Assembly: GCA_030704615.1 (NCBI GenBank)
Contig: CM060731.1
Location: forward strand, 40,424,001 to 40,488,000
DNA: 64,000 nucleotides
Direction of reading: 5' to 3'
Origin: Takakia lepidozioides
Taxonomy: Eukaryota; Plantae; Bryophyta
The stretch's first letter is position 1. The number at the start of each line of letters is the position of its first letter. The notes under the pieces are model-generated. The model was not told the DNA's origin. It did no database searches and saw nothing but the letters and a program-made list of their open reading frames with translations. Below, piece by piece: positions 2,061 through 54,649 of the stretch. The translations under genes were made by a program, and so were the position numbers.

Positions 2061-5000
2061 TTATGAGGAGGTTTCGGAAGTGGTGTTACTCTGACATGGG
2101 AGACCTCTGTTTGTGACTATATTTTGAATGTTGCCAATAGTCCATCTACTTGATCCTTCCACTCTGATAATGTAGGGGTTAGAAATTGTGTTGATATTGC
2201 AGAAATGGGTTGTCTGCTCAACCTCTCTTTATAGACCTGTTCTTGCTTTGAAAAGTTGTGGACTTCGCTTTGTTGCAAGAGTCAAATCTGCGTAGGAAGG
2301 TAATCACAAATGCACATTCTAGTAGTTTCAAATGTCCACTGTTAGACTCCCTATGAACAGATGGCAACAGGAATCATGTTTTTGTCCTTGAAATTTTTTG
2401 TCCTTGAATAATGAATAAATTAGTTCTACCCTGTCTAGCAGTGTCTCTAAAGTTAGCCCTTAGCAGGGATTTTGACGGCTGCTCCACAGCACTTCACCCT
2501 CGAGTACCCTCCATCTTGTGCTGAATGAGAGGAGAATCCTCTGTTTTTTTTCTAACCAAAGAATATCTCTGCAGGAAAGAGGAAGTTCTTTTCGAGTTGC
2601 TACGTTATACGCTTCACCTGTTCTGCAAACAAAATTTGTGAAAACAGAACCAGCAAAAGGGTTTGCAAACAAAGCCCAAATCTCAAGGTGGCATTTGGGT
2701 TGTGCCTAGTCTGTTTCCTAATATTCTAAAGACCCTTTGATAATATTTTAAACTCCTTTAACTTGCGGAAGAGTGCCAAACCAGTTTGATCCTCATGTAG
2801 CTTGGGGATGGTCATGGTCCATGGGTTCCATTAGACTGGAACTACCTCGGTCCAATGAGGGCTTGCCACAATAGAGGCCTCAATTGACAGCCATTCTCCC
2901 TCTTTTCCCGCATCTCTCCCTCTGTCCCATCAGGATGTGGAGAGAGAGGGAGAGAGGGAGTGATGACCGAAAACACAAAAAAAAAACAGGTGGAGGGGGG
3001 GGGTGACTGAGCAGCTGCTGCTCAGTCAACCCCCCCCCCCATTTTTTATTTTTTTTCTTTCCCTCATCTCTCCCTCTCTCCCTCTTTTCCCTCATCTCTC
3101 TCTCCCTCTAGACACTGGGCTTATGGAATTGTTGTCCCGACTTCCATTTTTTTGAGGAAATTGGAAAAAAAACTGCAAATTTGGGTTGCAGGGAATTTTG
3201 GATGTTTTTTTATCCAAAATGATTTTTTTTTTAAAATCCTAGTGAAATATTTTCATTAAAAAACTTGTGAGTTGCAAAACTCCCGTCAGTTTCTACTTTT
3301 TCAATCCAACCTGGATGAAAAAAGGACTTCATCTGACAGGACCTAAATACAGGGCAAGATAGGTTTAAAAAAACCCCCCCCATGTTTTTCATCTAACCTA
3401 GATGAAATACGGACTACATCTGTTGAGTGCAAGACAGGTTGAAAGCACCTCGATGTCTTTCATCTTCCACGAATGAGAAACGGACAACGTCCGTCGGGCG
3501 GACAGACTGGCGGATGTTTTTCATCCTGAGAAGGATGAATGACGGGCCAAACAGGGGAAAACCCTGCGCAACCCTAATGTCTTTATTTTTGCGCTGCGAG
3601 AGCGCGCGCGATGGCGGCTTGTGAGGCGCGATGGTGCTCGTGCTGCAGATACCTTGAGCTGCCAATCCTTGAGTGTTTATGGCTCCTGTGAGCGACGCCT
3701 GGGCGGGCTCTTTAAGGCGATGGCGGTGGCTTAGAGATGAGGGAAGATTCCCTGTCTCAGTTGTCTGTTTTTTTGCTGCACAAGGAAACCGCGGCAGTGA
3801 TGGCGGAAGCACCACCTGCATGCCTATGACGTTTCCCTAGGAGCCCTCCTCTGGATCTTTGATGAATGGCGGCACAAGGAAGTCTCTCTCCCTCCCTTTA
3901 TAAACCCTACCTTTTGAAACCAAGCTTTTTTTCTTGTGTTTGGCAAGACCTTGCTTTGGTTAAGATAGCAGTGCCGTGGTGCTGGCGGAGTCCTCCCTGC
4001 ACGGTTAGGCTTGTGGAGAGATGACGACTCTCCCCCAAACAGTTAAAAAAGGTTTTTTTTTCCGTTGGTTTTGCTTCCTTGCTTGCTTTGGCATTCTCTA
4101 CGCTTAGATTGAAGTGTATTTGACCTCGATAGCAAGTATGGAAGCCTGCTACTCACCTCGTGCATCCTCACTAACTCACAATGCGTTGTGGTTGTTTTTG
4201 GGACGCTTCCACTTAATATTCTGATGTCTAGGTGTTGCTGGATACCAAGTGAGATTGCAGAGCAGGGGAAAGAATCGCTGGCCAGGGACTCATCTTAAAA
4301 TGTTGAAAACTAAACTACTCTATGGTTGTTCTTGATCCTACCTCTTTCCTTCCTTTATTTTTGAAGAACAAGTGTAATGCTTTCTACGATGGGCTATTTT
4401 CGGCCCAGCCAGTGGAAGACCTCTGCTTTGTTGTGACAGCCGGGTTTATGATGGCTTGTGTGAGAGACACCATCTGTTTTCCAGGCACTAGTTTGCTTTG
4501 CTTACCTTATGGTAGTTGGAAACAATTTGAGAGGCTGCAAGGAACTGTTTGTTGCAGCTATTCGGGTACCCATGTTGACCCCTGTTATGTTCCAACCCGG
4601 ATGGCGTTGTTAGCTAGATGCTTAGGCTAGGGTATGGTGAAGATTCTGTGGATATTCGGCTGACAATGAAATATGGCAGCAATATATAACTGGTAACTGG
4701 TTTTTGAGGCAGCCAGGGTGGTCAAGTGGAAATACCCCCTGGACATGGTGTAATGACATGGTCAAATGTGGAATAATGTGAAGGGTGTACTAACAGTATC
4801 ATATACCGTCACAGGATGTGTATGCAGTCCTTTATCTTTACCTTGTTGTGTCATGAACTTTGATTTTCAGCTCTAGCAAGAAATAAATGTATAGGGGTAG
4901 TCTGGAAAACTTACCAGACATATCCACCTCCCCTGTGGGGGCAAGCTGTGTTGCAGACTAGTCTAAACCAATATTGGCAGGGCAAGGTATTTAAAATCTG

Positions 5001-5149: not shown

Positions 5150-6090
5150 TGGCCAAGTACCCGCCATCCCACCCAGACCTCTGAATGTATATCCTGATCA
5201 TGACTAGTGGTCAATTAGCATCAGTGGCATATTCTTTGGGTTATGAATAATACTGACATGAATACATTACTGTGCATGGATGTAATTCTGGATTTTCTAA
5301 AGCTTGATGATTGATGGATGGTGCCACTGTTAAGTGGCTGATATGTCTGATTATTCTTCTTATTCATGACAACGACCCTAGGGGTCATGTCTTTGTCTTG
5401 ACATGACAAAAAGTATCTTCCCTCTCTCTCCATGAAATTGAAACTGGAGAACACTTCTTCTATTGTCCTATATACTATGAGATCCGTGGGGATTCCACTG
5501 TCTACTCCGTGGAACCCAAACTCTCACTGAAATCTCTCACTATGAAGATCAAAAATGCATGGTTGCTTACCTCCAGTTGGGCGCCTCACACAGCAGCTCC
5601 TTCACGCTGGCGCTCCACCACCAGGTCGCGTGGGCACACTCCCTCGCTCAAACAACAAAAAAGGGAGAAGAGGGAGAGAGATAAGGGCGAGAGGGAGAGT
5701 GAGGGCTAAGAGGGAGAATGAGAGAGAGAGAAGGAGAGGGAGGGCAGCTCCCTCACGCGGCAGCTCCTTCACGCTGGCAGTCCCTCCCGCGGTGCTGGCG
5801 TTCGGCTGGCGCTCCACCAGCAGGTCACGGGGGCGCGCTCCCAGTTCGCTCAAACAGCAACAAAAAACAAAACGACATAGAAGAGGGAGAGAGAAGATAT
5901 ACATGTCATGTCAAGACATGGACAAGACCACTAAGGTCATTGTCATTGAAAGACAAAGCAACCCTTTACAGGGCATCATCTAACAACCCCTTTTACCAAC
6001 TCATTTGAACATCTTATAACTTTTCAGGGTATCTGAAAAAACAGGGTGGGAGGGCGGGATTCCTGGTCATTCATATCCTGAAAGTCCCAT
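5150..6090. repeat. Degenerate long inverted repeat (foldback/MULE-TIR-like) with internal direct repeats
   Basis: CCGCCATCCCACCC (~5161) pairs with GGGTGGGAGGGCGG (~6044). GTCTTGACATGACA...TATCTTCCCTCTCT (~5395-5430) pairs with AGAGAGAAGATATACATGTCATGTCAAGAC (~5888-5917). Internal direct repeat CAGCTCCTTCACGCTGGC at ~5594 and ~5761. Confidence 0.45.
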
Positions 6091-8526
6091 AAGTTGACAT
6101 AAAGCATTCATTTTTTGTTGTTGACACGGGTCAAGCCTTACATACTCTAGTTCTTGAGCCATTCATCTTCCTAAAAAACATCCTGTGTAGGCGTGAAACT
6201 GATCTGTCAGTGCCAAGACATATGCAAGATTCATAAAGTAGAAGCGGGGCTAAGTTTTTTTCAGGTATATGTAAGCCTGGATAGTCATTCCAGGACTTCA
6301 AGATCAAAACTCTGCCATAGTATAAGGTAGGAAGCGCACAGCATCTACCAGCAAGCAGTTCTTGAAAACCAAAATACTGATGGGGTCAGGTCTGAAGGTG
6401 CTTCAGTGCCAAGTCATAAGCCAGATTTCTAACAAAACAAAACATAGGGCTGAGTACCCTCAAGTAGATATGGGCCTGGAGTGGTATTCCAGGGCCTCAT
6501 AACAAGCTATGCTAGTTAAAGAAATGAACTCAGAAACCATTGTCCCCTATCATGCAATGAAATAGTGGTGATATAAGAGCCTTGAAGAATGTTTGTTATC
6601 ACAAGGTCTATCTTCTGATCCATCAGAGCCAGGCCATGGTGTTTCATTTCAGAGCTTAGTTTCCATGCTGCCAATGCTATAGCCGCAGCCATGTACCTTT
6701 GTTGAAAACAGCCAGAGCTTTCAACAGAGATTTTGTTTTCTATGAAGTCCCTTGTGTGTCTTAACTCCAAAACGTATAGAAGTGGTTATCAAGAACCAAA
6801 AACAGGGATAAGGAGTAAGAAGGTGATCCTCATTAGAGCAGACTTGAAGCCGATTTGAGGCAGCAAGATGGCAGATTTGAAACAACAGTTGGTATCAGCA
6901 GCTTCAGGCGGTAGCAGCAATCCCTTATGCATGAATCAGCTGCAAGCTTCAATAATTCAAGACAAGTGAAGACCCTCACCTGTGCCCGTCCCAAAAACCA
7001 CCACATAGAGATGTGTGTTAGTGAGGATGCATCAGGTGAGTGGCAGGTTTTCACAGTTGCTATCCATGTCAGTGTTGAATTCTAAAGCATGTACAAATCG
7101 TAATCCAAGCAAGGGTACACTCAAAAAAACCTTGAGTGTTTGTGGTATGCCCTGCGCCATGGCGTCCAGTAGATGTCTCCAGCAGAACGCAATCAAAGTA
7201 GATAGAGAGCAGCTCATACAGAAAGAGAGCAACATGTAATATGTGGCTAAGTAGGGGTGGAGTACTTCCCAACGAGGAGTAAGAGCGCCGCTGCAAATTT
7301 AACAGAATCATAAATTTCTGAGCAGAGCGATCACTGCATTGTCGACTGCCAGAGAAGAATCTGTCTATCTGCCATTGCGCATCCCAAAAGCCAGCCATCA
7401 CGAGTACCATGTAGCCGCAAGGGAGCAGGTTTACACGGCGCATCATCAAGGATCATAGAAGCACGAGTTCTGTGCTGTGAAATATGTCGGCCCGTTTAGG
7501 GCACAACTTCCCGATTTTTCATCCAGGGTGGATGAAAAATCATATTTTAAAGAGATGCACTTTGTTAATGGATGATATCCCATAAAAATGTATCTTAGGG
7601 TTACGGTATAGGCTTAGGTTTAGTAACTGCCATCATTAATGATGGTACAAATTACTACCTCTTGGATTTTTAGAATAGGTCACCATTATTCATGTATTTC
7701 ATCCAGTTTAGATGAAAGAAGCAAATAGTAAATATCCAGGCCAAATGAAATCCAAAAAGTTATAGAGGGAGAGGGAGAGAGGGAGAGAGAGGGCGTGCGC
7801 GGGTTTGAACACCGTGGCGCGTCAGTGTTGCGTCACCGCCGCCGGAAAACGCTCCGGCATGCGGGGGTAGTTGCGCCCGGGAGAGCTCGAGAGCAAAAAA
7901 AAAACAAAGTAGGGATGGAGGGAGGGGAGGGAGGAAGAGTGAGAGGAGGAGGGTGAGGGAGAGAGAGATCAGATAGAGAGATTGAGAGGGGGAGTGAGAG
8001 GCGGTCGGTGCAGCCGCGGCGCGCCAGTGTGGCGACCCCACCGGAAAACCTCGGCGGCGATCAGGCGCCTTCGCAAAGGGGAGAGAGAAGGGCGGCCACC
8101 TTGGCAGGAGGAGGATCCGCTGCGACGTTGGGGAATCGCACGAGCGTCGCTGCCTCAGGGGGACGTCGCACGGCAGTCGCAGATCTAGCGCAGAGGTGAG
8201 TTGAAGAGGCCTCTCATTTTTTATTTTATTTTTTTGGTTTTTTGGGTTATGGGGTTTTGCAAGGATCATTTGGGTTTTTGGGTCTTTGGCTCTTAGGGTT
8301 TTAAGGGTTACATAGTTTAGTTTAGGGTTAGTTATAATATAGTTAGTTTAGGATTAGCTGCAATATAGTTTGGTTTTTAGGGTTTTGTTTTTTGGTGGGG
8401 TGGGGACATATGGCTTTACGTTTGTAGGGTTTTTTTTTCAAGTTTTTCCAAGGGTTGGGAGTGTAACTCCTCCGGAGGTTACAGTGGGTCACAATACGGT
8501 ACTCTACCTCTCTCTCGTGCTAGGTC

Positions 8527-10342
8527 ATGCCGCGTGTTTATCGACGTGTCACGCTTGAGGATTCGTTGTTGGCTGTGCCACAACCACCCGCTGAGGGCGA
8601 GACGGCACGTTCGCCTCGTCTACGAGTTAGGCGGCAATATCGCCATGTCCGCACAGCTTTGCCCCCACGGCCACCACCCCAAGGTCGTAGGCCGCCAAGT
8701 CCAGAGGCACAAGCCCCGGGGAGACCCCGTCAGGACCGCCTCCCCAAGATTGAGTGTTGGTGCAGTTGGTGTTGGGCACGACTACCGGTTGGGAGGACCA
8801 CACCGATGATGCGGCGACCCCATGTTGTGCAAAAACATTACGCCAAGTACGAGATTGCTGATGCAGCAAAGGTAAGTCGTCCATATATTATCTTCTCACG
8901 TACTCCTCAATTAAAAGTACTATATCTAATGAAACCTCGCGTTTGTGAATTGAGTATTGATGCATTTCATATCATGCATCTTGCAGCCCCGTCTTGATGT
9001 CCAAGCTCGCAATTTTTTTGCTGAAGAGGCATACCGATGCGGGTTTCTTCCTTCTTACGAGCCACACCCCGTTCCGGATGTGAACATTTTTTTCTCGCAA
9101 CATGATGTAGATGCAGTTTGTGAGGTAGCGGGGTACGATGCGTGTTTTTCTATTTTTGGGCACCGGGCTAGGTGCTTGTCACCTACGCACACACATTCGT
9201 TATCCTTGACATCGGCACCCCCATCCTCACCATCATCCGCATCGTCTGTTCCTCCTATTGTAGATGGTCTTTCCTCATCACCATTGCCATCTGAGGTCCC
9301 TCATACTGACCGGCTACGTGTCCCTTCCCCTCCATTGCCGAGACCACAGCCGCCACCGAGTCCAAGTTCGACATCCTCGACATCGGCACCCCCATCATCA
9401 CCATCATCCGCATCGTCCGTTCCTCCTATTGTACATGTTCTTTCCTCATCACCATCGCCATCCTGGCCATCTCGGCCAGTACTACCTCCACACGAGATCC
9501 CTCATACCAACCTACGTGTCCCTTCCCCTCCATTGCCGAAACCACAGCCGCCACCGAGTCTGTATCCAGGTCCTACGGCAGAACCCGGATGGATCCCACC
9601 ACCTTTGGGGACTGTGTATGACTGGGACCGATGGATCACTAGGTTCCCACTCCGGGAGAAGGGCCCCCGAAGTGATGGACGGGCGCCGCCCCCTAGGAGA
9701 GGTGGACCGAAGTTATTTCGCACGGTTGGTCCGCGCCTTCGCCGGCCTAATGACGGCACCATACGTCATTGTGGTGCTAGGGAGCTATTCACGATGGGAG
9801 TCCAACCCCATTTCTACCAATGTCTTGTGCCTTGTCCAGTTCCGATTCCCGAGGGTGAGCCCTTTCTTTTTTGGGGTCGCATGTATTGCATGATGGAGGC
9901 AATGGACCCTAGTATGGGTCGCGGACTTTTTTTGATGGAGGGTGTAGTTTTGGGGGGAGGAGAGGATTCTGTGGATTTGTTCCCCTATTTTGGGCCGAGG
10001 TACACCCACCGGGAGTGGCAATTATTGCAGACACACGGCCTTGGGTCCTTGATCCATCCTTACATCATTGTTGTGAACGACAATGATGTAAGGGCGAGAA
10101 AATTGGGCTGCAAAGCCCATATTTATTGTGACGGAAACCCCGATGTGTATGGCAACGTGGCTGGGCTCATCAACAGTTCAGTTACCTTACCGCCGGGCCA
10201 CACCGCCAACGTGTTTTGGGATGAGCGCCATGACGGGGATAGTAGATTGGACCCTAACATCACCACTTTTGTGATGACATGTGCAAGGAGGACTATTAGG
10301 GCTGGAGAGGAGTTGTTTGCGAAGTATGACTTTAGGCGTTAG
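8527..10342 (+). CDS. CACTA-associated SET-domain protein (exons 8527-8871 and 8987-10342, about 566 aa): CxCxxC..H zinc motif, Pro/Ser-rich linker, C-terminal SET domain
   Basis: Phase-0 donor AAG|gtaagt at 8871/8872 and phase-0 acceptor ttgcag|CCC at 8986/8987. SET motifs: MGRGLF...LFPYFG (I), YCDG...GNVAGLINSS...ANV (II/III), ARRTIRAGEELFAKY (IV). The ORF is uninterrupted. Confidence 0.75.
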
Positions 10343-10656
10343 CCGACTTTCATCATGTGTAGATGGACATAGGAAGACATTTTGTACATTGAGGTGGCTT
10401 CCTCCACCGTGTATATATACACATAGGCATTGATGTGTATTTGGATGCAGTTTTTCATGCTATATTCAAGGGAGTTTGGGTGGACGTTATATGTGAATTT
10501 GGGTATTTTGAATTATATAGTGTCTCCTTCATGCGGTGAAGCAATGTATGTATTTCCCTCGTGTATATAATGTGTACTTTGGGTTTTATCCTGTATGATA
10601 ATGAACAACGCCATGTATGGAAACTGATAATGACATGGTTGTTTTTGGCATCTTAG

Positions 10657-11247
10657 GATGCCGGCCACAACCCCACGACGTTAATTCATGACGTTCATGA
10701 TCTTGTCATGAACCGGGATTTTGTTCCTTCGGAGAAGGATGCGTATCAAAGGGACCCGACCCCGTCTGAAATGGCGGTCTCCGATGATGAGGACAACAAT
10801 GACAATAGAATTATGCATGAGGATGTGGCAGCAATGGAGGACCTCTTAATGCATCAGATGGTAGATGAGGACACAAACTCTTTGAATGACATGGAAAAAA
10901 AAACCAAAACTTCCTTATACAAAGGGGCCAAAGTGAGTAGACTTTCAACCATCTTGTTGTTGCTAAATTTGCAAATCCGATTTGGCATAAGCAATGTGGG
11001 TATGTCCGCCATAATGCGGACTATTGCGGACTACATCCTTGCCCCACATTTGAAGCCGAGAATGCCACGATCAAGAAAAGAGGCAAGAGCAGCCTTAGAT
11101 GCTTTGGGGATGGGCCATAAGATTTTTCATGCATGTCCATGTGATAAAACCCTGTACTACGGAGAGGATGCGAAACTCACCAAGTGTCCAAAGTGCAACA
11201 AAGACCGATATCGGGATGATGGTCAAGGGAAGAAAGCCCCGCGCAAG
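10657..11247 (+). mobile_element. CACTA/EnSpm TnpD-type (Tnp2/Transposase_21) transposase exon, 3'-truncated
   Basis: LY.GAKVSRLS.IL.LLNL..RFG.S...MP.S..EA...L..LGM.....HACPCD..LY...CPKC...RY...KKAPRK is the typical N-terminal region of plant CACTA transposases. In-frame acceptor at 10656, donor AAG|gtatac at 11247. The DDE core is absent downstream. Confidence 0.85.
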
Positions 11248-11889
11248 GTATACTGTCGAGCGGCTTTTACTCACCCATCCCTTCGCTATTCGAGGTGGAA
11301 ACTCCAAGATAGAAGAGTTGGATATTTCTAAGCACTCAGCCCGCTCAGTACAATCAGTCATGACCTACAGCTAGTGAATCATGGTTGTGCTTCCCATTTG
11401 TATTCCTTCTTGCCTTCATGTTATCAATTTACCTTATCTGATACTGAAGCATCAGATTGCTTCAGTATCTACTTAGTTCAAGTTTATCATGCATTCATTT
11501 CACAGCTTCACTCATGTCTCTCTACATAGTATGCTTGTATCGAATAAGTATCAGATTATGATTTATCAGGTACTAGGTCAATGTCAAGGTGACTCTATTC
11601 CGCCCTATAGTATCACTACAGCTCTGCATGTAATAAGCATCTATTGTTCATCTTTTCTCCTTCTTTTTGCTCTCATTCTTGTTCTCCGCCTGATCTCCTC
11701 TTCCCATGACCCAGAAGCGCTCCCCGTGAAGTGTCCCTTCTTTCCGTTGCCGCCCCCATTATCTGCCCGCAAGCTGTTCTAACCACCTAACTAATTAACC
11801 GTCATCCCTGTAGTAACACGTTCCTTCTGCAGATGTCGTTCCCTCACAGTCGTTCCCTGTCAATGATAACTGTTCCTCATGTACTGTGA

Positions 11890-12050
11890 AAGGCTGTGTC
11901 AAGCTGTGTCGAGCTGTGACTGGCTGTGTTAGGCTCTGTAAGACTGTGTCGGGCTGTGACTGGCTGTGACGGACTGTGTCGACTATGTCGGGCTGTGCGA
12001 AGCTGTGGCGGGCTGTGTCGGCTGTGTAACCCCCCTAAAGCCTGCTACTG
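11890..12050 (+). repeat. Tandem ~10-bp GCTGTGTCG-type repeats, possibly a degenerate subterminal region
   Basis: Many GCTGTG(T/A)C variants, followed by CCCCCTAAAGCCTGCTACTG, which loosely resembles the CACTA end at 17521-17540. Confidence 0.55.
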
Positions 12051-12352: not shown

Positions 12353-12579
12353 CAGTGTTGGGCGGTTACCCGCCTGGGCCCCGGGTAACCGCCGGTTCCG
12401 GTTCCGGTTATGTGGAACTGGACCGGAACCGGACCCGCCTGCGCAGAACCGGAACCGGAATTGGAACCGGAAATCCAGGATTGTGTGGGAACCGGAACCG
12501 GCGGTTCCAGCTACGACCACATGTGTGGGAACCGGGTTTGGGGGTTAGGGTTCCGTTTCCGGTTCCGGTTCCACCCCTG
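12353..12579. mobile_element. hAT-like MITE with GGAACC/GGTTCC subterminal repeats
   Basis: Ends CAGTGTTGG... and ...CCACCCCTG form an imperfect TIR. The interior is packed with inverted GGAACCGG motifs. No clear TSD. Confidence 0.55.
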
Positions 12580-13407: not shown

Positions 13408-14760
13408 GCTTTCGGCAAAACAGGGGCTGTGTGGATCATATCTTCACTCTAAGCCAGATTATTCAGGGAAGGAAAAAAGAAGGGAAACCCACTTATGTTT
13501 TTTTCCTGGATGTCAGCAAATGTGCAGTGGTAGCATTCAACGACAGAGGAGAGGGAGGAAGTGATCTTGTGGCAGTGGGGTAGCCAAGAGATCCCGGTCC
13601 TCCCTTCCTACACTTACCTGGGCGTTGAGTTTTCCTCCGTTTGTAGTTAGGATGCACATATCCGGAAAGTTGTTCAAACTGGCAAGGGCAAAGCTCTGGG
13701 GCTCACTAATTTTTTCCACTGCAGAGGGGTCATCTCTGAGGTTAAGAAAACCATGCTTTGTCGTGTTATTAGACCTGCCTTGGAGTACGGATCTGCTATA
13801 TGGGTTGATAACTCCAACCAGGCTAAGTCTCTAGAATCCATTCAAGTGGGGGTGCTTAAGGAGTGTATGTCAGCATGCTCCAAAACAGCCAATGTGGCTG
13901 TTCGGGATGAGTTTGGCATTCCATCCTTAAGCTCCCGACGAGATGAATTCAAGGTCAGATGGTGGGGTCAGCTGCAACATATGCCCAACACCAGATATCC
14001 TAAGTTCATCGACTCTATATCTTGGAAACAGGACCGCCCTGTCAAACAGGCTAAGTCCTGGCAGAAGAGAGTACAAAAGATTCTCAAGGACCTGGATCTG
14101 GATCCGCAAGTCTTGACCCTGTTGGATAAATCTGCCTTAGAGGCTGTAGTGTCTGAGGCCATGTCTGTTGCCATGAGATTGTCTGATGAAAATGAAGTTA
14201 GGCAGAGAACTTCCCTGAACTTGTTTCCAGTCAGTGACATGGGGGTGGACATCTTGGATGACCTCAAGGGTCTACCCACTCTCGGCACTAGACTGAAATT
14301 TAAACTCAGGGCAGGAAGCCTACCGTTGAACAACAAACAGAAGCAGAGAGGAAAGGGAGAGTGCAATTGTCCGTTCTGTGGGCAATCTGAAGACAGTATT
14401 CATTTTCTGATACGCTGTCCGGGGTTCTCTCACCAAAGAGAGGCTCTCTTCAATTTTATCAAGGGAATTGTGCTTGTACCCCTGTTTACCAACTTTGAAA
14501 GTCTCGAGGCTGAGCCAAAAGCCCAGGCCCTCCTAAGGCCTAGTTTTTGGGCAAATCACACACAGCAGATTGATGCTTGTGTGAAGGGTTTTCTAGAGGA
14601 TATCTGGAAAACCCGGATTAATTCCTTATACGATGGTAAGTCTTACTACCAACGTCAGCCCCTGACGGAGGTAGGTTCTGTTCCTTTTGTTCCCGCTCAA
14701 ACTGGGCGCGGGGTCAATGGCCACAAGGCTACGGCAAACAACGTCTTATGAGTACAATCT
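13408..14760 (+). mobile_element. 5'-truncated, internally deleted LINE (RT remnant plus C-terminal CxxC..H..C zinc finger)
   Basis: GFRQNRGCVDHIF...FFLDVSK, YTYLGV, IRPALEYGSAIW and CPFCGQSEDSIHFLIRC. Ends ...TTATGAGTACAATCT. Flanked by the TSD CTTGTTTCTCTCG (13395-13407, also 13381-13393, and 14761-14773). Confidence 0.9.
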
Positions 14761-20396: not shown

Positions 20397-20952
20397 TGTT
20401 GGTAATTTTTCCAAATTCATTTTTTCCAGAAACAGATGAGGATTTTTGAGTCTCAGCTGGGGATCTGGGGTCAACATTTTTCGAAAAGTCACACTGGTCT
20501 CCGACATTTCCGTCCACACCGAGTAACTTAAAATTCATTAGGCTCAGCTGACTAACCCCCGCAATCCATCAAACAGAAGTGAATGGAATATTCTCTTTAC
20601 AGAGTTAGGGGTGCCCATGAAAGGAAGGAAGGATGAGGGTCTCATCTATCCATCCATCCCAGTCAGCAGCGTTGACGGGAGGGAGAGAGCGGAGGGTGGG
20701 TGGGAGAGCGCGGGTTTGGTTAGAGGGGGCGTTAAGACTGAAGACCGACAAGCCGCAGTACCGAACGTTTGTCTTGCCAAGCAGCCATGGCGGATTGCAC
20801 CGTGCACATGCCTTCTTCAGGAGACCCACAAGGTGCAAAGCTCGCAAAACAATTCTGGGAGTCTGGGGGATGGCAGGGACTGTCTATGATATTCTGGGAT
20901 TGGAGTGCAGGGAGGGGTAGGGCAGGAGGGTGGTGAAAGAGAGAGAGGAAGG

Positions 20953-22428
20953 ATGGTGCAGGTGAAATGTTGGGGGTTAGAGAAGGACAGGGGAGTTTGC
21001 TCAGACAGGATTGCGCCCGTGCATCCAGTGATGTTGCAGAATTTGACCAAGTCTGTGAGCAGCAGAACCAACAGGAGGGGGGCTCCGACCCGTGTTGATA
21101 CTTGGGATGAGGGGATGCAGTCTAGTGGTGAGGAGAGGAGCAATCCCGGGATGGAGGGAGAGGTAGTGTGTAGAGAGAGGGCTGGGGGTGTGCAGTGGAA
21201 GTATGTGAAGAGCGGAGGGCAGCGGGGGGGGATGCGGGTTGTGCATGCGCAGGAGCAGTGGGATCCGGTGGCTGAGTTGGTTACATTTGTGAAGTCTTAC
21301 ATGGTGCCGGAAGGGTATCCGGAGAGTGTGTCGCCAGCGTACACTCCATACATGCAGTGGCGTGCCGTGCAGTACTTCTTTGGAGGGGCGATGAGTGTGT
21401 TCACGACACGGTCTCTGCTGCATGCACTGGGGGTGTCTCGTGGGGGTGCCACATCTTCTGCGGTGGCTGTCAACTGGGTGATCAAGGATGGGGCGGGGCG
21501 GATTGGAAAGATGCTGTTTGCTCGGCATGGCAAGAAGTTTGATTGTGATCTGAAGCAGCTGCGGTTTGCTGGAGCTATGTTGATGCAGCTCGGCGCTGGG
21601 GTGGAACTGGCGACCATGGTGGTGCCGCACCTGTTCTTACCGCTAGCGTGTGCTGCGAACGTGGCCAAGAATGTGGCAGCAGTCACGTCGACGTCAACGC
21701 GTGCCCCTATATACAAAGCTTTTGCTCGACGGGAGAATATCGGAGATGTGACTGCGAAAGGGGAGTGTATCAGTAATATTGCTGATCTCATGGGTACAGG
21801 TCTTGGGATATTTATCTCGAAGCAAAATCCGTCGCTAGTGGCCACCTTCTGTGTTCTTTCTTGTGGGTATATAGTGTCTTCTTTCAATGAGGTCAAAGCA
21901 GTCCGAATGCCTACGTTGAACCGTGCCAGGTTTGAGGTGGCTGTGCATTCCTTCCTCGATACTGGGCAGGTGCCGTCGCTTGAAGAGGCAAATCAGAAAG
22001 AGGTCATTTTTTTTCCTCCTTGGGCACAAGAAAGACCAGTGGAGATCGGTGCTCGTGTGTCTCAGGCTTTCACGAACTCGCAAGAGTTCACGAAAGTCCA
22101 CGAAATTTTTCGGAAAGAGAAGTATTTGGTAACCTACCGCCCCACCCGGAGGCGTGCTTACGCTGTGATCAAGGACTCTGCCACATCCGATGATGTGCTC
22201 CGAGCTGCTTTTCAAGCGCATTTGGTGGTGCATCTTCTGAGGCGAGCACCCAAGGCAGGGCAACAGATGGATGCGGAAAGGAAGACAATTAAGGTAGAAA
22301 CATTGCTGGAGGAGAGCTGCCAACGCACTCATGCTTTGTACGAGGATTTCAAACTGCAAGCCATTTCCAAAGGCTGGCTTGTAGGAGAGTCGCTGCTGAA
22401 TCCAGGAGACGCAAGGCTGTCTGTATGA
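20953..22428 (+). CDS. RUS6: ROOT UVB SENSITIVE (DUF647) family protein, RUS6-like, single exon; start uncertain
   Basis: SYMVPEGYPESV...YMQWRAVQYFFGGAMSVFTT...NWVIKDGAGRIGKMLFARHGKKFDCDLKQLRF...ENIGDVTAKGE...LNRAR matches RUS6-type DUF647 proteins. Confidence 0.9.
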   Translation: MVQVKCWGLEKDRGVCSDRIAPVHPVMLQNLTKSVSSRTNRRGAPTRVDTWDEGMQSSGEERSNPGMEGEVVCRERAGGVQWKYVKSGGQRGGMRVVHAQEQWDPVAELVTFVKSYMVPEGYPESVSPAYTPYMQWRAVQYFFGGAMSVFTTRSLLHALGVSRGGATSSAVAVNWVIKDGAGRIGKMLFARHGKKFDCDLKQLRFAGAMLMQLGAGVELATMVVPHLFLPLACAANVAKNVAAVTSTSTRAPIYKAFARRENIGDVTAKGECISNIADLMGTGLGIFISKQNPSLVATFCVLSCGYIVSSFNEVKAVRMPTLNRARFEVAVHSFLDTGQVPSLEEANQKEVIFFPPWAQERPVEIGARVSQAFTNSQEFTKVHEIFRKEKYLVTYRPTRRRAYAVIKDSATSDDVLRAAFQAHLVVHLLRRAPKAGQQMDAERKTIKVETLLEESCQRTHALYEDFKLQAISKGWLVGESLLNPGDARLSV

Positions 22429-27874: not shown

Positions 27875-30800
27875 CTATGGCGGACTCAGAGCAGACAGGA
27901 TTGTGTACCATGGCTCATGCACTCGGCATGTCACACTTGCTAGTCTGTCTAATGCATCTGCCACAGCCATCACCTTGTCCATCAGAAAGCTCCCTCCAAT
28001 CCTTCGCAAAGCTGACTCGGCAACTGTGACACCCTCAGATACCTTGCCTACGACCAGCAGAGCGCGGACACTTGCTCCAATGGTGGCTGACACGCGTGCA
28101 AACACAGCATCGTCAGGTGACAGACTTTTGTTAAGAACTCTTGTCATCAGCTCCGTGTTGGCTGCCAGGTCGGCGCTAGCTTCAGCCTCCACGTTCCCAC
28201 TAGCGATTTGCGCCAACAACCCTCCAATCTGAGTGATCGTTACAGTTGGCTTGCTCAACAGCAGGTCGAGTCTTTGTCTGCCACTTTCCATCACCTTTTC
28301 CAACTCGGTTCCAACAATACCCTGGCCTGCCAGCCCTTGCCTTGCCACCAGCAACCTGCCACCACATCCCAACAATGTCATGAGTTGGTGGAATTGTGGT
28401 GTCACATCAAAGAACATTCACATTCACATCCAATGCCATTCTTGGCTCCAAAATACACGCACATTGGAGAATTCGGCAACCACACTTACACATCTGCAGT
28501 CATGGTCAAGTTCCAATTAGTGGCACACTCCTATACCTGATATTTTCAACAACGATCTGAATCTGACATACCCAATTGCAAGTTAAAGCAGTCATAACAG
28601 ACAAAGTAGTGTTACATATCATAAGAGCAATTGAGGGAGCTAGATGATACCCAGTGGCAATGACAAGGATTCGCTGAAATGCATTTTGGCAGTCTTGCAG
28701 CCGTGCAGCATTCAGCGTGAGAGTCTCAGGCACCCTTGCCTCTGTGGCTGCCTCACTACTACGGAGAATGGCCAAAAGGCCCAAGCGGACCATAGTATCA
28801 TTGCTCTTCCACACCACCTCCCTGTCCTGCCTTTCCCCACCTGTCTCCCCAACATCACCCACATTCATAAAACCTCTTCAGTTGCCAAGCTACAGCCTGC
28901 AAGTGAATCAAATCTAAAAAGGGACCAGAAACTATGACTTACCTTGATACAAACAATTAGTTCGGGCTTTCCAGATATCCTCTAGGAAGCCCTTCACACA
29001 AGCATCAATCTGCTGTGTGTGAGCAGCCCAAAAGTGAGACCCCAACAGGGCCAGGGCTTTAGGCTCAGCCTCAAGATTTTGAAAGTTGGTGAACAGAGGT
29101 GCGGAGACAATGTCCTTGATTGCCTGAAGAGGGACACTCTCTGGTGAGACTATCCCGGACAAATTATCAGAAAATGAATATTGTCTTCAGGTTGCTGGCA
29201 CATCGGGCAATCGCAATCTCCTCTTCCTCTCTGCATCTGTTTATTGTTCAAAGGTAGGCTTCCCGCCCTGAGTTTACATTTCAGTCTAATGCCAAGGGTA
29301 GAAATAGTGTGTGTGTGTGAGAGAGAGAGGGGGAGAGAAATTAAGTTAAACACCCAATAGAGCCCACCCCCGAAAGCCGGAACGTGAAGTGGCTCTTTTG
29401 TTACGCCGGCCTTGGCTGGAGTCATCTCTCTCTCTTAAACACCCATAGGGGGCCCTCAGGCCCATGGGATAAACGAAGAACCAACTTCAAAGTACACTAA
29501 ACGTCCCAAAGAGAGAGAAAGAGCCCCATCAAAGATGGTGAAGGAATGAACAAGTATTAGTAATAGGTGATTTTGTCATGGCGTCTTGGTTACAATGTTG
29601 GCTGGATGGGCTCAAGAGGGCTGTAAACTGTGCGTGGGGTCTATGGCCACAAGGCTACGGCAAACAACGTCTTAGAGTACATTCTCTCTCACTATGGACA
29701 CGACATAAAGACTGACAGGAGGAAAACCAACCTGCCAGGATAGGTGACCCTGCTATAGATGCACTGCCTGAGAGTCCTGTGGTGATAACGATGCGGCCAC
29801 CTGTACGCATAGACGAGGCAGGAGGCAGACCGGTAGTTGGGGAGCTCACTGGCAATCCTTGTGAACCTCCCCCCATTGCTGCCAATGAAGCTTCGATTTC
29901 GATTCGATCTTGTTCTAAACTGCCTGACACCTCAGCAAACCAGCTAGAAGTGCGTGGAAGGCGCTCTGCAATTTGAGCTGCTGAGACGGATGCAACAGCC
30001 ACCAGTTGAAAGCGTGTTGCAAATGCTTTGCGCATGTAGTCTACACCTGCCAAGCCACTAATCAGCGGGGCCAGGGCTCGCAGGCGGGTGGAGCTGATGT
30101 CTTGCTTCAGCACCTGCATCCATCAGCCCCGACACCCAGACATAAAAGATTCCCGATAAGCTTTCTCCTCTCCTTAGCTGTGAAGCTTTGTTGCACCACA
30201 AGTGCTGACCAAGTTAAGATCCAAATCTAGTTCTGAACCTGATCTAGAATCCAGACCTGGCTACTTGTTCGCTGCGTGATGAAGCCTCCAGCCTGGTTGC
30301 CTTAACCTTGCCAGTAACAGTGGGTCTCACATGTAGAGAGCACTTCTCATTCAGACAATTCCCAAACTTGACGCTATTTGTGAGGAGTGTATTTGTGTAT
30401 TTTGACCCTAGTAGCTTGCATGTGTGCAGGTGGGAGATGCATCTTGCCTAAGATCCACAACATGAATCCGATAAGGCGATCCAGCAAGATGTTCCAAAGA
30501 TTATGTCACTCATCATTCTTGTAAGACACTCCCGCCATTTCTGAAGTTGGAGCACGTGAATCACAATCTGATAAAACCAAAAGAAGAGGGACGAAGTGAG
30601 GATGCAGGCTGGTGAGGGAGGCCAACCTGAAGTTGTTCAAAGATGAAGCGTATCCCCCTCACCAGAGTGATTGCAAATGCACTTTGTGATTTCTCGTTGT
30701 CTGAAAGTGCCGCTGATAACTCATCAACCAGCACTTGGTGCGCAGCCTTTGCCTCATTGTCGCGGACTGGTGCACCCAGCTTTAGGATCAGACCAGATGC

Positions 30801-43489: not shown

Positions 43490-45043
43490 CTATCCAATGC
43501 AATACGGATATAACCAATCCCCATCAGGAACCATCTCAAGAGGTGGAGTCAAGCATCCCATATGCCAACCTCTAGAGCATCGATCGCACACCAGCATGGT
43601 GGCTGCCCCTCTAGCAGACCCACATTACATGCTTTTCAAACTTGCAAATACCACTGCCAGGTTTGGGTCAATCCTGCCATCGACATTCGGAAGGTGACAT
43701 GGCGCACAATCACGCACATGGTCCTTCCAAGTTATGCCATCCCGACCCTCCAAGACCAAGACGCCTGAGGGCAAAACCTCTCGAACCCTCAAAATAACAC
43801 GTCCTGCAGTCACATCCAATGTCATAGGAGCAGTCTGCTGCAGATAGACATAGTCACCAGGGTTGAATCTCCGAACCCCAGGACGATAGCCCCCACCACG
43901 TATGGTAGCATACCTCAACGTATCATGATGTTGTGCAATGGCAAGGTTCTCGAAAGCCATGGGCATGACTTTCTTGAACAACTTTGCACGCTGCTCACAT
44001 GCACGTGCCCACACGTCCGGATCGTCAAGATTAAGAACTGTAGCAGCTTCTCTGCGAATGGATGTAGGCAAATCCGGCTCTTGGCCAAAGAGAAAAAAGT
44101 ATGGTGAGAAGGAGGCAAGTGATGCTTGCTTGCTGAACCTGTAGCCCATGGCTAACCAGGGTAACTAAAGGTCCCAATCTCCTAGGTGTCCCTTCTGCAA
44201 GCCATACTTGCGCAAACCCCTCTTTACTGTCTGAACAACTCTCTCTGCCAAGCCATCGGCCTCAGGATGATCCCGAGAAGTGGTGCGGTGGTCTATCAAG
44301 GCCTTGTCACACAAAGCCTGAAACTCCCCCAAGAACTCTCTCCCTTGGTTCGTGAGTACCTCAGCTGGAGCACCAAATCAGCTAAGCACACAATCCAAGA
44401 ATGCATACGCAGCTCCCTCACTAGCCTTATCAGGCAATGGAACCAATTCAATCCACTTGGAGAAGTGCTCCACCATCACCAACACGTACTTGTTGTGGCG
44501 CATGGTCAGTGGCAATGGCCCTGCGAAGTCAAGACTCCACCTGTAGCCCAATCCCATGATCGGAAGAGGGTGCAATTGTGGAGTAGGGGCATTGAATGAA
44601 GCACGCACCCTGTCACACACCATGCACCTAGCCACAAATTGTTGCACCTCTGTGTGCATACCACGCCACCAATACTGCCCCTGCAATAGACTATGAGTGC
44701 GTCGCACCCCAAAATGCCCCAACTCCTCATGGGCATGCCGCACTAACCGTGCCCGCTGTGTTGGGTGAGGCACAATCCTCACTTGACCATCCTCCCACAC
44801 TCGGAGCAGGTGTGTCCCCTCCCACTTGAACCTCTTGGCTCGTTGTAGGATCCGATCCCTCTCCTTGGCAGTCACAGTGGCTGCAGTGTCTCCAGTGCGG
44901 AGGTAGTCCAACACAACTGAATCCTCATGTATATCTTTGGCGCTACCTTGCTCATTGCTGGCCTCAGGGTCCTCAAACACTTGATCTACAGTCATCCTTG
45001 TTGCAGGTCCAACCTGGCCTTCCGCTGCCAAGATACACAGAAG
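43490..45043 (-). mobile_element. Ty3/Gypsy integrase with C-terminal PHD finger (degenerate)
   Basis: HEELGHFG...YWW...CMVC (HHCC), WSLDFAGPLP, VEHFSKW and a GPY/F-like region, then M*CGSARGAATMLVCDRCSRGWHMGCLTPPLEMVPDGDWLYPYC (PHD pattern). Confidence 0.88.
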
Positions 45044-47362
45044 CCCACAGAACCCGAGAAGGGTGTCATCCCTAGCAATCCAACGTACCAATTGCTTCAC
45101 AACAGTTTCATCTTCGGCCACCATCACTGGGATGCTTCCCATTGGAATATTTGCGACCTCCTCTCAAGCTTGAATGGAACGGAGTTGACAAAAATAGTGG
45201 AGAAATGACGAGCAACAATCCAATCTACCATCACATCTCTGTAAATTCCAGCCACATGCTGAAATATATCATCTCTTTCTCCCGCTCTATACTTCAAACC
45301 TTTCCTCAAAGACCGTCTTGTAGTATCAATAGAAGGACCCCCCACATTTGAAGCCAAAAAATGATGCAATCTCGGACCCCCCCAAAGCTACACAGTCTCA
45401 AACATTGTTTTTGTGCTAGTACCATACCTCTTCCCTTGTTGAGACCTGTCAATATTCTTGCCCATATCAACAATAAAATCCCACAAACTTTCTTTTCCTT
45501 CAAAATCCCCCCTCCTATGTGCATCAACAATATCACGACAAAATTTGAGAACATCTCCTCTTTCAATTGCCTCAATCCCAGACTCCTTCAAACTCCTACA
45601 TCGCACAGACAAGGATGCCACTTTGGTCTTGGCCTCCCACAATTTGAACCTCAACTGCCTCAACTCCTGTCTGTTTTTGTAAACTTGTTTGACAATCTCG
45701 ACATTTCCAAGATATGACAACCTTCTTCCCTTGCCAGTATCTCTCTCCCCTCTATATTCCATGGCACCTCTCTCTCTATATACCCTCATTCTGAAGTCAT
45801 TTTCCAAGGGAATGGAAGAACATGTTGAACACCTCAAGTTTGGAAATGGCTCCCCATCCAATGACACTCTAAAACAATCCGTGTGCCAAAACGTACCAAC
45901 AACCTTATGCTCTTGATTGTTTAGAGTGATGGTTGCATGTGTCAACGGCTCGACATACCACTTCTTTCCTCCCTTGCTATCTTGAAGGAATGGTTTCAGA
46001 CTTATTCTCTTGTGGTTGTACTCCCACCATTCATCCCATAGGCCCCAACACAAACTGTCTCTTCCTTTGTTGCATTGGGACCTTCGCTGTAATTGTCAAT
46101 CCTCAATCAGATCTGCCTGTTGGGCAGCGTCAACACAAGTGTATGGAGTTTGTGACGAGGATGCTCCATTGTTGATGCCACAATTGGATTGTCAAGTGGT
46201 GGGGATGGCAACACAGGTTGACTGACCAAGAAAGAGCTTAGATCCCGTTTACATCTTTGGCAATCATAGGCTTTGGAGGCCTTCCTCTCTTTTTGCACAG
46301 TCCTTCACTACTTCCAACCTTCTGGCAAATCTCTGCATCGACACGAGTTTTTCCCTTCACATGCTCTGTCAAAGAAGATTGCAAAGAACCTGTCCTTGGA
46401 AACAAGAGTAGCCACTTTGAATCAAGTGCGCACTTAATCCTTATGGAACCCAACTGCAAATAGTCTTCAATTGTGGCTTCCACAATCTCAAATCTGTTTC
46501 CAGGATTGTCCTCACAAAACCGAGCGACTTCCTCTAATGCCTCCTTCACCCTGTTCTTCTTTGCATCTAATGCTTCATCTGCATTTACAGGGCTGATGAC
46601 ACATTGTGATGAACCCTTCCCATGACGCCTCTCATAGGCTATGCGATGCCCCTCACTCCTCAAATAAGATCTCATAAAGTTTGCACATGCATCATATGGT
46701 TTGTTTTTCCCAGACCGTGCATAAACATCCTCACACTCAACACACCATATGTGGAACATTGCTTGTCCTTGTTGATCCTTTGTCATGAGCTCAAACTTGT
46801 CACATCGTCCTTCTGCAGAGATTTTCCTTTCAACGGCTCTAATCTCTTTCTGCCATTTTTGAATATCGCTGGATGTAGCCAATGTGCTGCACAATCTACC
46901 ATATCTCTGTTGAAGTGCATGCTCATGTGCATGGTCTTCATTTCCACCATCGCCAGCAAAGGGTGTATCAGGGTCCATCCTCATCTTTTTAGACACTGGT
47001 GCCGGGTCCTCGCCTGGTCTGTCCTCATGCATGATCGTAGAACCACTGGAAGATAGAGGTCTTTTCAATCCTTGGTCCCCATCATTTTGGTCTGAAATCT
47101 TAATGTGTACAGTATCCCCTTTCAGAACCATCCTCTCTTCCTGCTTGGCTGAAAGGACATTACCCCCCATGGAAAGGAAATGAAATTTTCCTGAGACAAG
47201 CTCATCACCTAGAATTTCTGCTCGGATGCATTTGTATGTGACACCTTGCATAGTGAACACAGAACCAAGCCTGTTTGGTGGTGCATCTCCTCCAACGAGC
47301 AGGACTTTTACTTCCAACTCTTCTTCCATGATGAGTTCACCTGCAAAATGCAATGAAAACAT
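45044..47362 (-). mobile_element. 5' half of a P-element/THAP9-like DNA transposase gene (frameshifted)
   Basis: A chain of minus-strand ORFs with CxxC/H motifs ends at VMVAEDETVVK...DDTLLGFCG and continues logically at 52178 on the plus strand (VQDNHVC...). Confidence 0.6.
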
Positions 47363-48514: not shown

Positions 48515-49755
48515 GCAGGGTGACTTCAATGCCCAAGTGGGCAAAGGGCTCCATCAGGACGATATCATTGGGTCTTCTGGTGAGGACGAGCTGAATTCTA
48601 ATGGCAGATGATTAATTAACTGTCTGGAAGAGCTTCAGCTTTTGACCTTGAATAACAAGACAAGAGGTGACCAAGTGCAGTGGACTCGTGAGAAATCCCA
48701 AACTGGGGAACGTTCCATTGTGGACTATATCATAATGGACAAAAATATGTTCCCCCAGTGTACCAATGTGTTGATCGACAGAACTGATATTGGTACCTCT
48801 GACCACTTCCTGGTTTGGACTGAGATCAAAAGGTGTTTTCCCAACACCAGAGTAGAAGAGATTCTCAAGGACCTGGACCTGGATCCGCAAGTCTTGACCC
48901 TGCTGGATAAATCCGACTTAGAGGCTGTAGTGTCCAAAGCCATGTCTGTTGCCATGAGATTGTCTGATGAAAATGAAGTTAGGCAGAAAACTTCCCTGAA
49001 CTTGTTTCTAGTCAGTGACATGGGGGAGGACATCTTGGATGACCTCAAGGGTCCACCCACTCTCGGCACTAGACTGAAATTTAAACTCAGGGAAGGAAGC
49101 CTACCTTTGAACAACAAACAAAAGCAGAGAGGAAAGGGGGAGTGCACTTCCCATTGTGTGGGCAATCTGAAGACAATATTCATTTTCTGATACACTGTCC
49201 GGGGTTCTCTCACCAAAGAGACGCTCTCTTCAAATCTATCAAGGGAATTGTGCATGAATTGTCCTCCAATTGTAATTGGGATGCACATATCCAGAAAGTT
49301 GTTCAAACTGGCAAGGGCAAAGCTCTGGGGCTCACTAAATTTTTCCACTGCAAGAGGGGTCAACTCTGAGGTTAAGAAAACCATGCTTTCTCGCGTTATT
49401 AGACCTGCCTTGGAGTACGGATCTGCTATATGGGTTGATAACTCCAACTAGGCTAAGTCTCTAGAATCCATTCAAGTGGGGGTGCTTTAGGAGTGTATGT
49501 CAGCATGCTCCAAAACAGCCAATGTGGCTGTTCGGGGTGAGTTTGGCATTCCATCCTTAAGCTCCTGACAAGATGAATTCAAGGTCAGATGGTGGGGTCA
49601 ACTGCAACATATGCCCAACACCAGATATCCTAAGTTAATCGACTCTATATCTTGGAAACAGGACCGCCCTCTCAAACAGGCGAAGCCCTGGCAGAAGAGA
49701 GTAGAAAAGATTCTCAAGGACCTGGACCTGGATCTGCAAGTCTTGACCCTGCTGG
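48515..49755 (+). mobile_element. Scrambled LINE fragments: AP endonuclease piece and two C-terminal pieces in swapped order
   Basis: GDFNA...NSNG...SIVDYII...TSDHFLVW (APE domain) at ~48515-48835. 48850-49253 matches 14068-14473. 49255-49755 matches ~13630-14125. Confidence 0.88.
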
Positions 49756-51188
49756 TTGCTCACACTCTATTATGGGGTACGAGCAAGGATTTGCAGCAGG
49801 CTGCTGATGGACGGGTACAACAAGCCTGGGTAGAGGCCTTCGTACCGTTAGGAGAAGAAGAGAGTGCGGTGATTGCACCAGGACCACCTCAGTTGTCGCC
49901 ATTGGACACCACACCTCTTGTGTGGCAGTGCCCGGATGAAGGCATATGCTTTCTGGACTTGTTTGGCAGGATCAGCACTGGATTGGCTGAAGTACTGCAG
50001 GCAGGTGTACGAGTTCGACGTTACCTGTATGTGGAGAGGGATGAGTCTGCACGACGTGTCTCACTGCGCCACGTTGCTCAGTTGGTACAGCAGTACCCTG
50101 ATTTGTTGCCAGTGTCTGCAGTTCGTGGATACCAACAAGCCTTGCCAACAGACATTTCGTTGCTGGGGGCGCAGGATTTGGAGCGGGTTGGCTCCATTGA
50201 TCTGGTAGTGGCAGGTTGGCCCTGCCAAGGGCATTCATCAGCCGGGCATGGCAGTGGATTGCGAGACTCGAGGACGGGTCTGTTTTGGGAGATGGTGCGG
50301 ATTTTGCGCCACTTGCAGCTTCATCAAGCTGTATCTCCAGCATACATCTTGGAGAATGTGCCACTGATGGGTGATTCTCGGGCCAGGGTGATGGCCAGTG
50401 TGCATCAAGTCCGGTCGTGGTTTGGGTCAGCAATGTTGCTGGATGCAGCTGCAGTGGGGTCATGGGCTCATCGTCCACGGCTATGGTGGACTAACTTGAT
50501 GCCACCCGCACTGCTCAAGCGTGCATTTGATGGGGTGCAGCGGCCAACACACCTCACAGTGGATAGCATTTTGGACCTAGGGAGGCAGTCTCAACGTGTG
50601 AGACACGATGACCGTTCGCCTTTGGCAGTGGTCAACAGTGTGGGTCAACCACGAGCAGCATTACCTACACTGCTCAGCTTCCCAGGATCCCATGCTTTTC
50701 GGGATGGTGGACCTGGCCTCTTGTGGGATAGCCAGTTGCAACAATTAGTGGAGCCCAATGCTGACGAGCGCAAGCGGGCGATGGGTTTTACCACAGGTAC
50801 CACGGCGGTGCCATCTCTTTCTGAGGCATCACGTCGTCAGGTGTTGGGGCAAACAATGGATCTCAATTGCTTGACCTGGATTATCAGCTTGGCTATGGCT
50901 GAGCAGCGCAGAGTACGGAGTACACTTCCCTTCATGGTCTCCCTGCCTACCGAGACGGTACAGGAGTGGGGCCGAGCAGGTAAGGACCACGAGGTGCAGG
51001 CCGCATCTATGGCACACGTGGGAGGTGCTCGAGGTTCAGAAGGAGTGGCAGCCAAGGCGGCGGTGATGGATCAGGTTGGGGATTTTTCTCGGATTGAGGA
51101 GGTCCTCAAGGATGGGATGATGGGGCAAGATGAGACATTGTCACTGACAGAGGAGGCAGTGGTCACTGCTCAAGAGGTTGCAACATAG
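49756..51188 (+). CDS. C5 cytosine DNA methyltransferase domain within a Gypsy pol
   Basis: Motif I FLDLFGRIS (~49950), II YVERD, III TDI, IV DLVVAGWPCQG (catalytic PC at 50220-50225), VI ILENV (50352), VIII HRPRLWW, IX ER.RAMGF..G.T, X RRQVLGQ. Confidence 0.88.
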
Positions 51189-54369: not shown

Positions 54370-54649
54370 TTTTTTTAATTAATTTGTTAGATTTTATTAT
54401 GTTTTAAGTGAATAAATTCGATATAATATAAAAACATACATATACATATTGGAGGGTTATTTTTAATGATGGAAAATAAGAATATACATACAGAAGGGGG
54501 TACTTTTTAAAAATTGTAAATTTTTGTATATTTACAGGAGGGGGTTTTATAATCTTCAAAAAATATGTACAGAGGGGGTATAAATTATCCAAGGACCCGT
54601 ATACAAGGGGTTTTTTTTATTAGGCGACGAACGCACGTGATACGCACAG

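Follow-up and report, generated by a model that had tools for sequence, protein, structure and literature searches.

A SET-domain exon nested in the transposase gene of bryophyte CACTA elements, identified through a truncated copy in Takakia lepidozioides

Results

We examined a 64,000-nucleotide (nt) stretch of the Takakia lepidozioides genome (GenBank assembly GCA_030704615.1, contig CM060731.1, positions 40,424,001 to 40,488,000; hereafter the window), in which a forward-strand unit carries a first coding exon, a SET-domain exon and a transposase exon. A preliminary description, made from the sequence alone, had proposed that a CACTA transposon splices this one first exon to either a SET-domain protein or its transposase. 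The unit begins with a non-coding 5' exon (8082-8195, start approximate; one contig joins this region to 8522/8524) and a 5' untranslated region (UTR) intron (8196-8523), whose GT..AG borders were seen on direct checking of the window letters. Shared coding exon 1 (8527-8871, ATG at 8527, 115 amino acids) contains a putative CxCxxC...H zinc motif (8755-8838), a divergent module resembling the transposase-associated domain and carrying an 8-residue insertion, and ends in the phase-0 donor AAG/GTAAGT at 8871/8872. Two acceptors, 8986/8987 and 10656/10657, are both in phase 0 relative to this donor. The proximal acceptor closes a short intron of 115 nt (8872-8986) and opens the SET exon (8987-10342), which has 451 open codons and its own stop (10340-10342) and encodes a linker, a Pro/Ser-rich region (9196-9560) and the SET domain (9794-10339). 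The distal acceptor closes an intron of 1785 nt (8872-10656) that encloses the entire SET exon, and opens transposase exon 2 (10657-11247; 197 codons, open until the GT of the donor at 11248), encoding an acidic region and the N-terminal part of a Tnp2/TnpD-type transposase. The coordinates, donor, acceptors and 5'-UTR intron of the preliminary description all check on the window letters.

The 451-codon open reading frame (ORF) is longer than any found in 1000 local-composition shuffles (maximum 338), and an artefactual reading frame was discarded in view of the shuffles, the homologues and the fold. Internal duplications of the Pro/Ser-rich linker are spaced by 171 and 198 nt, both multiples of three, so that they keep the frame; in a contig alignment, a related transcript is approximately 180 nt shorter within this linker. 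Searches were run separately, exon by exon, and not with the joined 566-residue product. The transposase exon matched Riccia and JGI loci upstream of Transposase_21 (tblastn, E down to 6e-24), and downstream exons of these loci hit PF02992 and PF13960 (Transposase_21 and DUF4218). These matches uphold the TnpD-type exon proposed at 10657 and support assignment of the window element to the CACTA/EnSpm type, with a Tnp2-type DDE transposase.

Contigs 88-97% identical to the window provide independent evidence that other copies exist. The 5'-UTR intron is spliced out in a contig of run X1 (depth 15), and in one contig of depth 6, 92-96% identical to the window, exon 1 is joined to the distal acceptor (8871>10657, GT..AG). 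This contig derives from a related copy and shows that the transposase is made by skipping the SET exon. A further contig diverges from the window at the 11247 donor. As for the SET isoform, the alignment of one contig starts precisely on the AG of the 8987 acceptor and leaves 11 bases unaligned past it, which is no more than suggestive of the 8871>8987 splice.

The window SET domain alone scored 19.4 bits against PF00856 in a Pfam search (cut-off 22.4, E 0.0015), such that the HMMER check proposed in the preliminary description fell short for the single sequence and was made good through homologues and fold. A full HMMER scan recovered 55 relatives at 30-58% identity (best E 1e-17); all 34 of the 34 aligned family members match PF00856 (best E 2.6e-9) and no other Pfam family. 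With the window sequence as query, a word-indexed homologue search and a single-sequence PDB search returned no match, and single-sequence folding gave no usable model, with a predicted local distance difference test score (pLDDT) of 33; these outcomes reflect limits of sensitivity, because the full scan found the relatives. An alignment-based model reached pLDDT 89.3, matched SETD7 in Foldseek (E 1.5e-6) and gave VIA Z 12.3 over 132 residues (root-mean-square deviation 2.9). Its structural neighbours are SETD7, SET8 and the COMPASS and PRC2 SET domains, together with PR domains and SUVH9, and comparison with a Streptophyta-only Atlas cluster gave a TM (template modelling) score of 0.81. The SET domain of the preliminary description is therefore real, its fold being confirmed at the level of the model. 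The core motifs lie at 9917-9925 (GxG), 9986-10003 (YxG..Y), 10130-10177 (DG..N.AG.INS), 10208 (second conserved Asn) and 10304-10327 (GEEL..Y, terminal Tyr codon at 10325). GxG, YxG..Y, DG..N.AG.IN, the second Asn, GxEL and the terminal Tyr are 90-100% conserved in the family, across sequences of approximately 30% identity, and all are kept in the window.

Relatives of the element were analysed in Riccia sorocarpa (L001, L004, L016, L017) and in metagenome contigs (L007, L018, L020, L022-L039). In 19 of the 24 loci with enough flank, Tnp2 sequence follows the SET ORF on the same strand at a distance of 0.75-2 kb, and the transposase-bearing SET loci among these 24 show no other arrangement. 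As 12 of the 19 linked loci are copies of one family, they amount to about eight independent lineages. Outside this pattern fall three fragments and two Calypogeia genes; the latter are an instance of SET apart from Tnp2, an outcome that the preliminary description had counted against its proposal, to be set against the 19 linked loci. Relatives with the repeated layout show 30-45% identity to the window. One is a complete 10.3-kb element (L016, 5980-16234) with CACTAC..GTAGTG termini and a 3-bp target-site duplication (TSD), ACC; L027 and L030 have a common CACTAC 5' end and differing flanks, and L001, L004 and L017 have CACTACTAC 5' ends. The proposed position of SET between exon 1 and Tnp2 inside CACTA terminal inverted repeats (TIRs) was thus found in relatives, with the complete element as the clearest case, while the window copy is without TIRs.

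The ratio of non-synonymous to synonymous substitution rates (dN/dS) of SET, a comparison that the preliminary description had suggested, is 0.12-0.3 between subfamilies, rising to 0.38 in pairs with decayed copies, which points to purifying selection. Within a family the values are scattered around 1, and several such copies carry stops. This is the pattern expected of a gene that is selected in active lineages and decays after insertion, and it supports SET as a conserved, selected component of the element rather than chance cargo.

The shared-exon layout recurs in the window and in L016, L017, L018, L020, L021, L027/L030 and L002: in these eight lineages a CxCxxC...H exon (partial in L002) leads to a phase-0 GT donor, followed by a short intron of 102-135 nt (88 nt in L002), after which the SET ORF opens from an acceptor in phase 0. 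Wherever the region is intact, another acceptor of that phase leads into the transposase ORF. In four relatives, L001 and L004 (Riccia genomic DNA), L015 and L019, the zinc motif and SET form one uninterrupted ORF, so that a motif-SET fusion protein exists without that intron; L001 and L004 have a weak phase-0 GTA at the position homologous to the exon 1 donor, which could act as donor for a transposase isoform. Because the phase-0 layout is conserved in eight lineages and intronless fusions occur in four relatives, we strongly infer an exon 1-SET isoform, and a single first exon feeding both products is supported.

Capture of host fragments is common in CACTA elements, and the SET ORF could be such a passively captured fragment, or a separately promoted gene, lying in the intron, with exon 1 serving the transposase alone. 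The transposase junction is the one seen in contigs, and family members without a transposase exist in Calypogeia, as this alternative would predict. Yet it sits poorly with the purifying selection between subfamilies, with a position and phase that are constant in the eight lineages, and with the union of motif and SET in one ORF in four relatives. Moreover, the start of many SET ORFs coincides precisely with a T-rich TAG acceptor and their first Met lies well within the frame, against a background in which 5.8% of stop codons in these sequences have a T-rich TAG context. We regard capture or separate promotion as very unlikely.

The assignment of the zinc motif to the CxCxxC..H transposase-associated class fared less evenly. 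The window motif is placed there mainly by position; of 11 relatives, 6 match PF13963 weakly in this motif, none of them reaching the cut-off (best E 0.008). A Pfam search with window exon 1 gave no PF13963 hit and a local hidden Markov model of the relatives' motif did not detect that exon. Direct comparison of the window motif with that of the relatives gave an hhalign probability of 26% (E 7e-4).

A second gene, divergently transcribed and marked by an HxLGxGG motif, is present in complete relatives; it lies inside the elements on the minus strand (L001 6039-8720, L004 7488-8987, L016 7265-9545, L017 5619-7753, L020 32-2475, L027/L030 4900-6900). This gene had no Pfam hit, and none was detected in the window; an Atlas lead connects it to PF03004 (Transposase_24) at 0.89. 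The proteins are possibly bryophyte TnpA-like proteins, a domain class that has been stated as restricted to flowering plants (PMC13547354). SET as a replacement for TnpA was rejected for the relatives, which carry this gene; with a separate divergent TnpA-like gene in the complete relatives, SET would be a third product.

Members of the SET family also occur without a transposase. In Calypogeia fissa, L005 and L006 (each 10001-11520) are single-exon genes with a Cys/His-rich N-terminus, flanked on each of two scaffolds by the same neighbours, an mL59-like and an FtsH gene, and are candidates for either a domesticated gene or the host source of SET. Ginkgo Gb_21150 (P0015) is a seed-plant member that groups with L002, which has the transposon-type exon layout. 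Comparison of SET and transposase phylogenies gave trees that were poorly resolved save for the pair L016 and L017, with the window on a long branch. Viral contigs yielded no SET relative and bacteria only ordinary SET at 29%; a recent viral or bacterial origin was set aside for want of close relatives, viral folds matching no better than cellular ones.

The window copy itself is a 5'-truncated CACTA/EnSpm fragment. Searches of the window found no TIR pair with a TSD around the unit, and no catalytic Tnp2 core, further transposase or 3' end anywhere in it. A CACTAC pair at 1975 and 12655 was dismissed as element ends, the TSD being absent. A candidate but unproven 5' end (7491-7717) starts CCCGTTTAGG and contains subterminal palindromes at 7513-7541 and 7694-7717; its first letters, CCC, are not a CACTA terminus, and no partner 3' end or TSD was found for it in the window. 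These two palindromes within 7513-7717 are candidate subterminal repeats of the window copy, and Riccia relatives have extensive arrays. On the minus strand, region 2900-3560 combines TTTCATC..GATGAAA palindromes like those of 7491-7717 with a GA-rich tract and, near 3556, a CCCTGTTTGG end. The similar palindromes and end fall within 3297-3556, and the region is probably the 5' end of a related element. Inverted arms of 43 nt, approximately 495 nt apart around a GA-rich core (5366-5946), mark a possible miniature inverted-repeat transposable element.

Downstream, the copy is truncated by a separate multi-copy repeat resembling a long terminal repeat, which starts with TGT at 11254, is annotated as far as 12200 or 12600 (right end not mapped) and includes 10-nt tandem units (11874-12022) and inverted GGAACC arrays (12387-12571). 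Five contigs per run end at 11254, and the repeat from this position is abundant in both runs. An ORF running beyond 11247 was discounted as continuous transposase, given the contig that leaves at the GT donor and the separate repeat from 11254.

A long single-ORF RUS6 gene (20890-22425) is closest to those of Ceratodon, Sphagnum and Physcomitrium, from which the host is a moss. This gene and a RING plus helicase C-terminal exon (RAD5-like, 219-1037) are ordinary host genes. The remaining repeats comprise Ty3/Gypsy-like pieces interleaved with fragments resembling long interspersed nuclear elements (LINEs) at 49569-55605, where a C-5 cytosine DNA methylase fragment (PF00145, E 1.8e-12) lies just ahead of a reverse transcriptase ORF (RVT_1, E 3e-33); a gag-like ORF at 54727 and an integrase piece on the minus strand (44381-45163), both Ty3/Gypsy-like; and one LINE-like element present in pieces in both orientations at 80-95% identity (13626-14760, 28933-29299, 48849-49755, 57322-57517).

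Discussion

The unit described here combines a single promoter region and first exon with a SET exon that is conserved and under selection and whose product has a SET fold. The explanation that we favour, with moderate confidence, is a two-product CACTA unit whose SET isoform is probably a lysine methyltransferase brought to element chromatin, where its marks favour expression or mobility. Splicing of exon 1 to the acceptor at 10657 skips the SET exon and yields the transposase, whereas use of the acceptor at 8987 would yield a protein comprising the zinc motif, the Pro-rich linker and SET, terminated by its own stop and presumably with its own 3' end within the transposase intron. The SET protein, maintained by selection on the element, would most likely be an S-adenosylmethionine-dependent lysine methyltransferase with an N-terminal module in common with the transposase. 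It may reach element chromatin through this shared zinc module or through the TnpA-like protein, and methylation of histone lysines or of element proteins could then keep copies transcribed or competent for movement.

Several observations weigh against this explanation. The RNA nature of the sequence runs, of which X1 carries the same species label as the window, is a guess. The contig that starts at the 8987 acceptor is 88% identical to the window and has a 1-nt deletion at 9072; with only 11 unaligned bases past the acceptor, the 8871>8987 junction was not read in the contigs, so that of the two splices in the preliminary description the one to the transposase was observed and the one to SET was not. 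The zinc motif of the window, divergent and interrupted by its insertion, is recognised mainly by position. Finally, the canonical NHS is replaced by NS(S), with His changed to Ser family-wide, and the SET protein stops 4 residues past the terminal Tyr, leaving no post-SET segment.

These last two features raise the alternative that the two-product layout is correct and the SET domain catalytically dead, acting as a reader, decoy or scaffold for histone tails or the methyltransferases of host silencing, or in the choice of insertion sites; the PR domains and SUVH9 among the structural neighbours are compatible with such a role. Against it stand the 90-100% conservation of GxG, the motif-II Tyr, the Asn residues, GxEL and the terminal Tyr, and the precedent of LegAS4/RomA, the closest solved profile match (E 1e-5), which likewise has no NHS His and is nonetheless an active H3K14 methyltransferase (PMC10653858). 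We consider an inactive domain unlikely. Catalysis by the window SET domain looks plausible from its residues; the matches cannot assign a substrate.

An active enzyme might alternatively damp the element, by placing a repressive mark or methylating the transposase, or act on a non-histone target, providing self-limiting control. Two isoforms that are mutually exclusive from one transcript would suit a switch of this kind, and some structural neighbours, SET7/9 for example, methylate non-histone proteins. The chromatin factors described from transposons argue in the other direction, as both VANC of VANDAL elements and Spm TnpA act against silencing (PMC12730594; 10.64898/2026.08.24.746577), and we think a self-limiting or non-histone role quite unlikely. 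In the favoured explanation, SET would be a functional analogue of VANC and TnpA as an element-encoded factor acting on the element's own chromatin, with the differences that these are sequence-specific DNA binders without SET and of demonstrated function, and that the bryophyte SET is known from sequence.

Maize Spm and Arabidopsis ATENSPM3 produce TnpA and TnpD by alternative splicing (PMC13547354; 10.64898/2026.08.24.746577), and the preliminary description had drawn on this analogy. The parallel holds in that one unit gives two products and the relatives have Tnp2/Transposase_21 with DUF4218, CACTA termini and a 3-bp TSD. It is loose in that the second product here is a protein with an enzyme fold nested in transposase intron 1, whereas that of En/Spm is the DNA-binding factor TnpA, and in that complete bryophyte relatives, with their separate TnpA-like gene, would have three products.

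SET domains borne by transposons are themselves known. In red-algal Plavaka elements of the EnSpm superfamily (Bostrychia, Chondrus), PAG2 is an N6-adenine DNA methylase fused to SET (10.1101/2025.02.11.637652); PAG2 is a separate gene accompanying a Plavaka-type transposase, whereas here SET is fused to the first exon of a Tnp2-type transposase. The Pfam search detected SET only, and no N6-adenine methylase, in the window SET exon or its relatives. HarbingerS and oomycete MuDR elements carry an accessory SET methyltransferase, and SET-carrying Helitrons are described (PMC12730594; 10.1101/2025.02.11.637652); these share with the bryophyte elements the state of a DNA transposon with accessory SET but belong to other superfamilies and hosts, and the accessible portions of the citing papers make no mention of a nested shared-exon design.

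SETMAR/Metnase is a primate SET-mariner fusion and a single domesticated host gene. It resembles the present case in that SET is joined by splicing to transposase-derived sequence, and differs in that the fusion here lies within a mobile multi-copy element, with SET as the alternative to the catalytic transposase. SET7/9, SET8 and LegAS4/RomA have the same fold (Z 11-12, Foldseek E about 1e-6; profile E 1e-5) and core motifs at 15-23% identity, while the bryophyte SET is without their MORN, ankyrin, pre-SET or post-SET parts. In the searchable literature, outside which lie Repbase Reports and subscription journals, we found no account of either a land-plant Tnp2-type CACTA element with SET or a SET gene lying in a transposase intron and using the first exon of the transposase. 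Lack of precedent, as put forward in the preliminary description, is narrowed to land-plant Tnp2-type CACTA elements in view of HarbingerS, MuDR, Helitrons and the EnSpm-lineage Plavaka; the nested two-product SET design of moss and liverwort CACTA elements appears undescribed.

A stronger version of our explanation would have an ancient bryophyte CACTA clade encode an active histone lysine methyltransferase as an alternative splice product of the transposase gene, targeted by the zinc motif and countering silencing by H3K9me or H3K27me3, with Calypogeia and Ginkgo keeping transposase-free host genes. We hold this version to be possible but doubtful.

The plant factors known to counter silencing, VANC and TnpA, are DNA binders, and SET cargo in other elements has been recognised only at the sequence level. 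With a conserved, selected SET protein built into their transposase gene, land-plant CACTA elements are candidates for transposons able to write histone or protein marks of their own. They occur in lineages whose transposon silencing relies on H3K27me3 (Marchantia) or H3K9me2 (Physcomitrium) (10.1101/2022.10.24.513474), and since both plants are transformable the question can be put to direct test. Finally, the analysis defines a plant SET family whose members are now annotated as hypothetical or counted among host genes, and which is a possible source of host genes in Calypogeia and Ginkgo.

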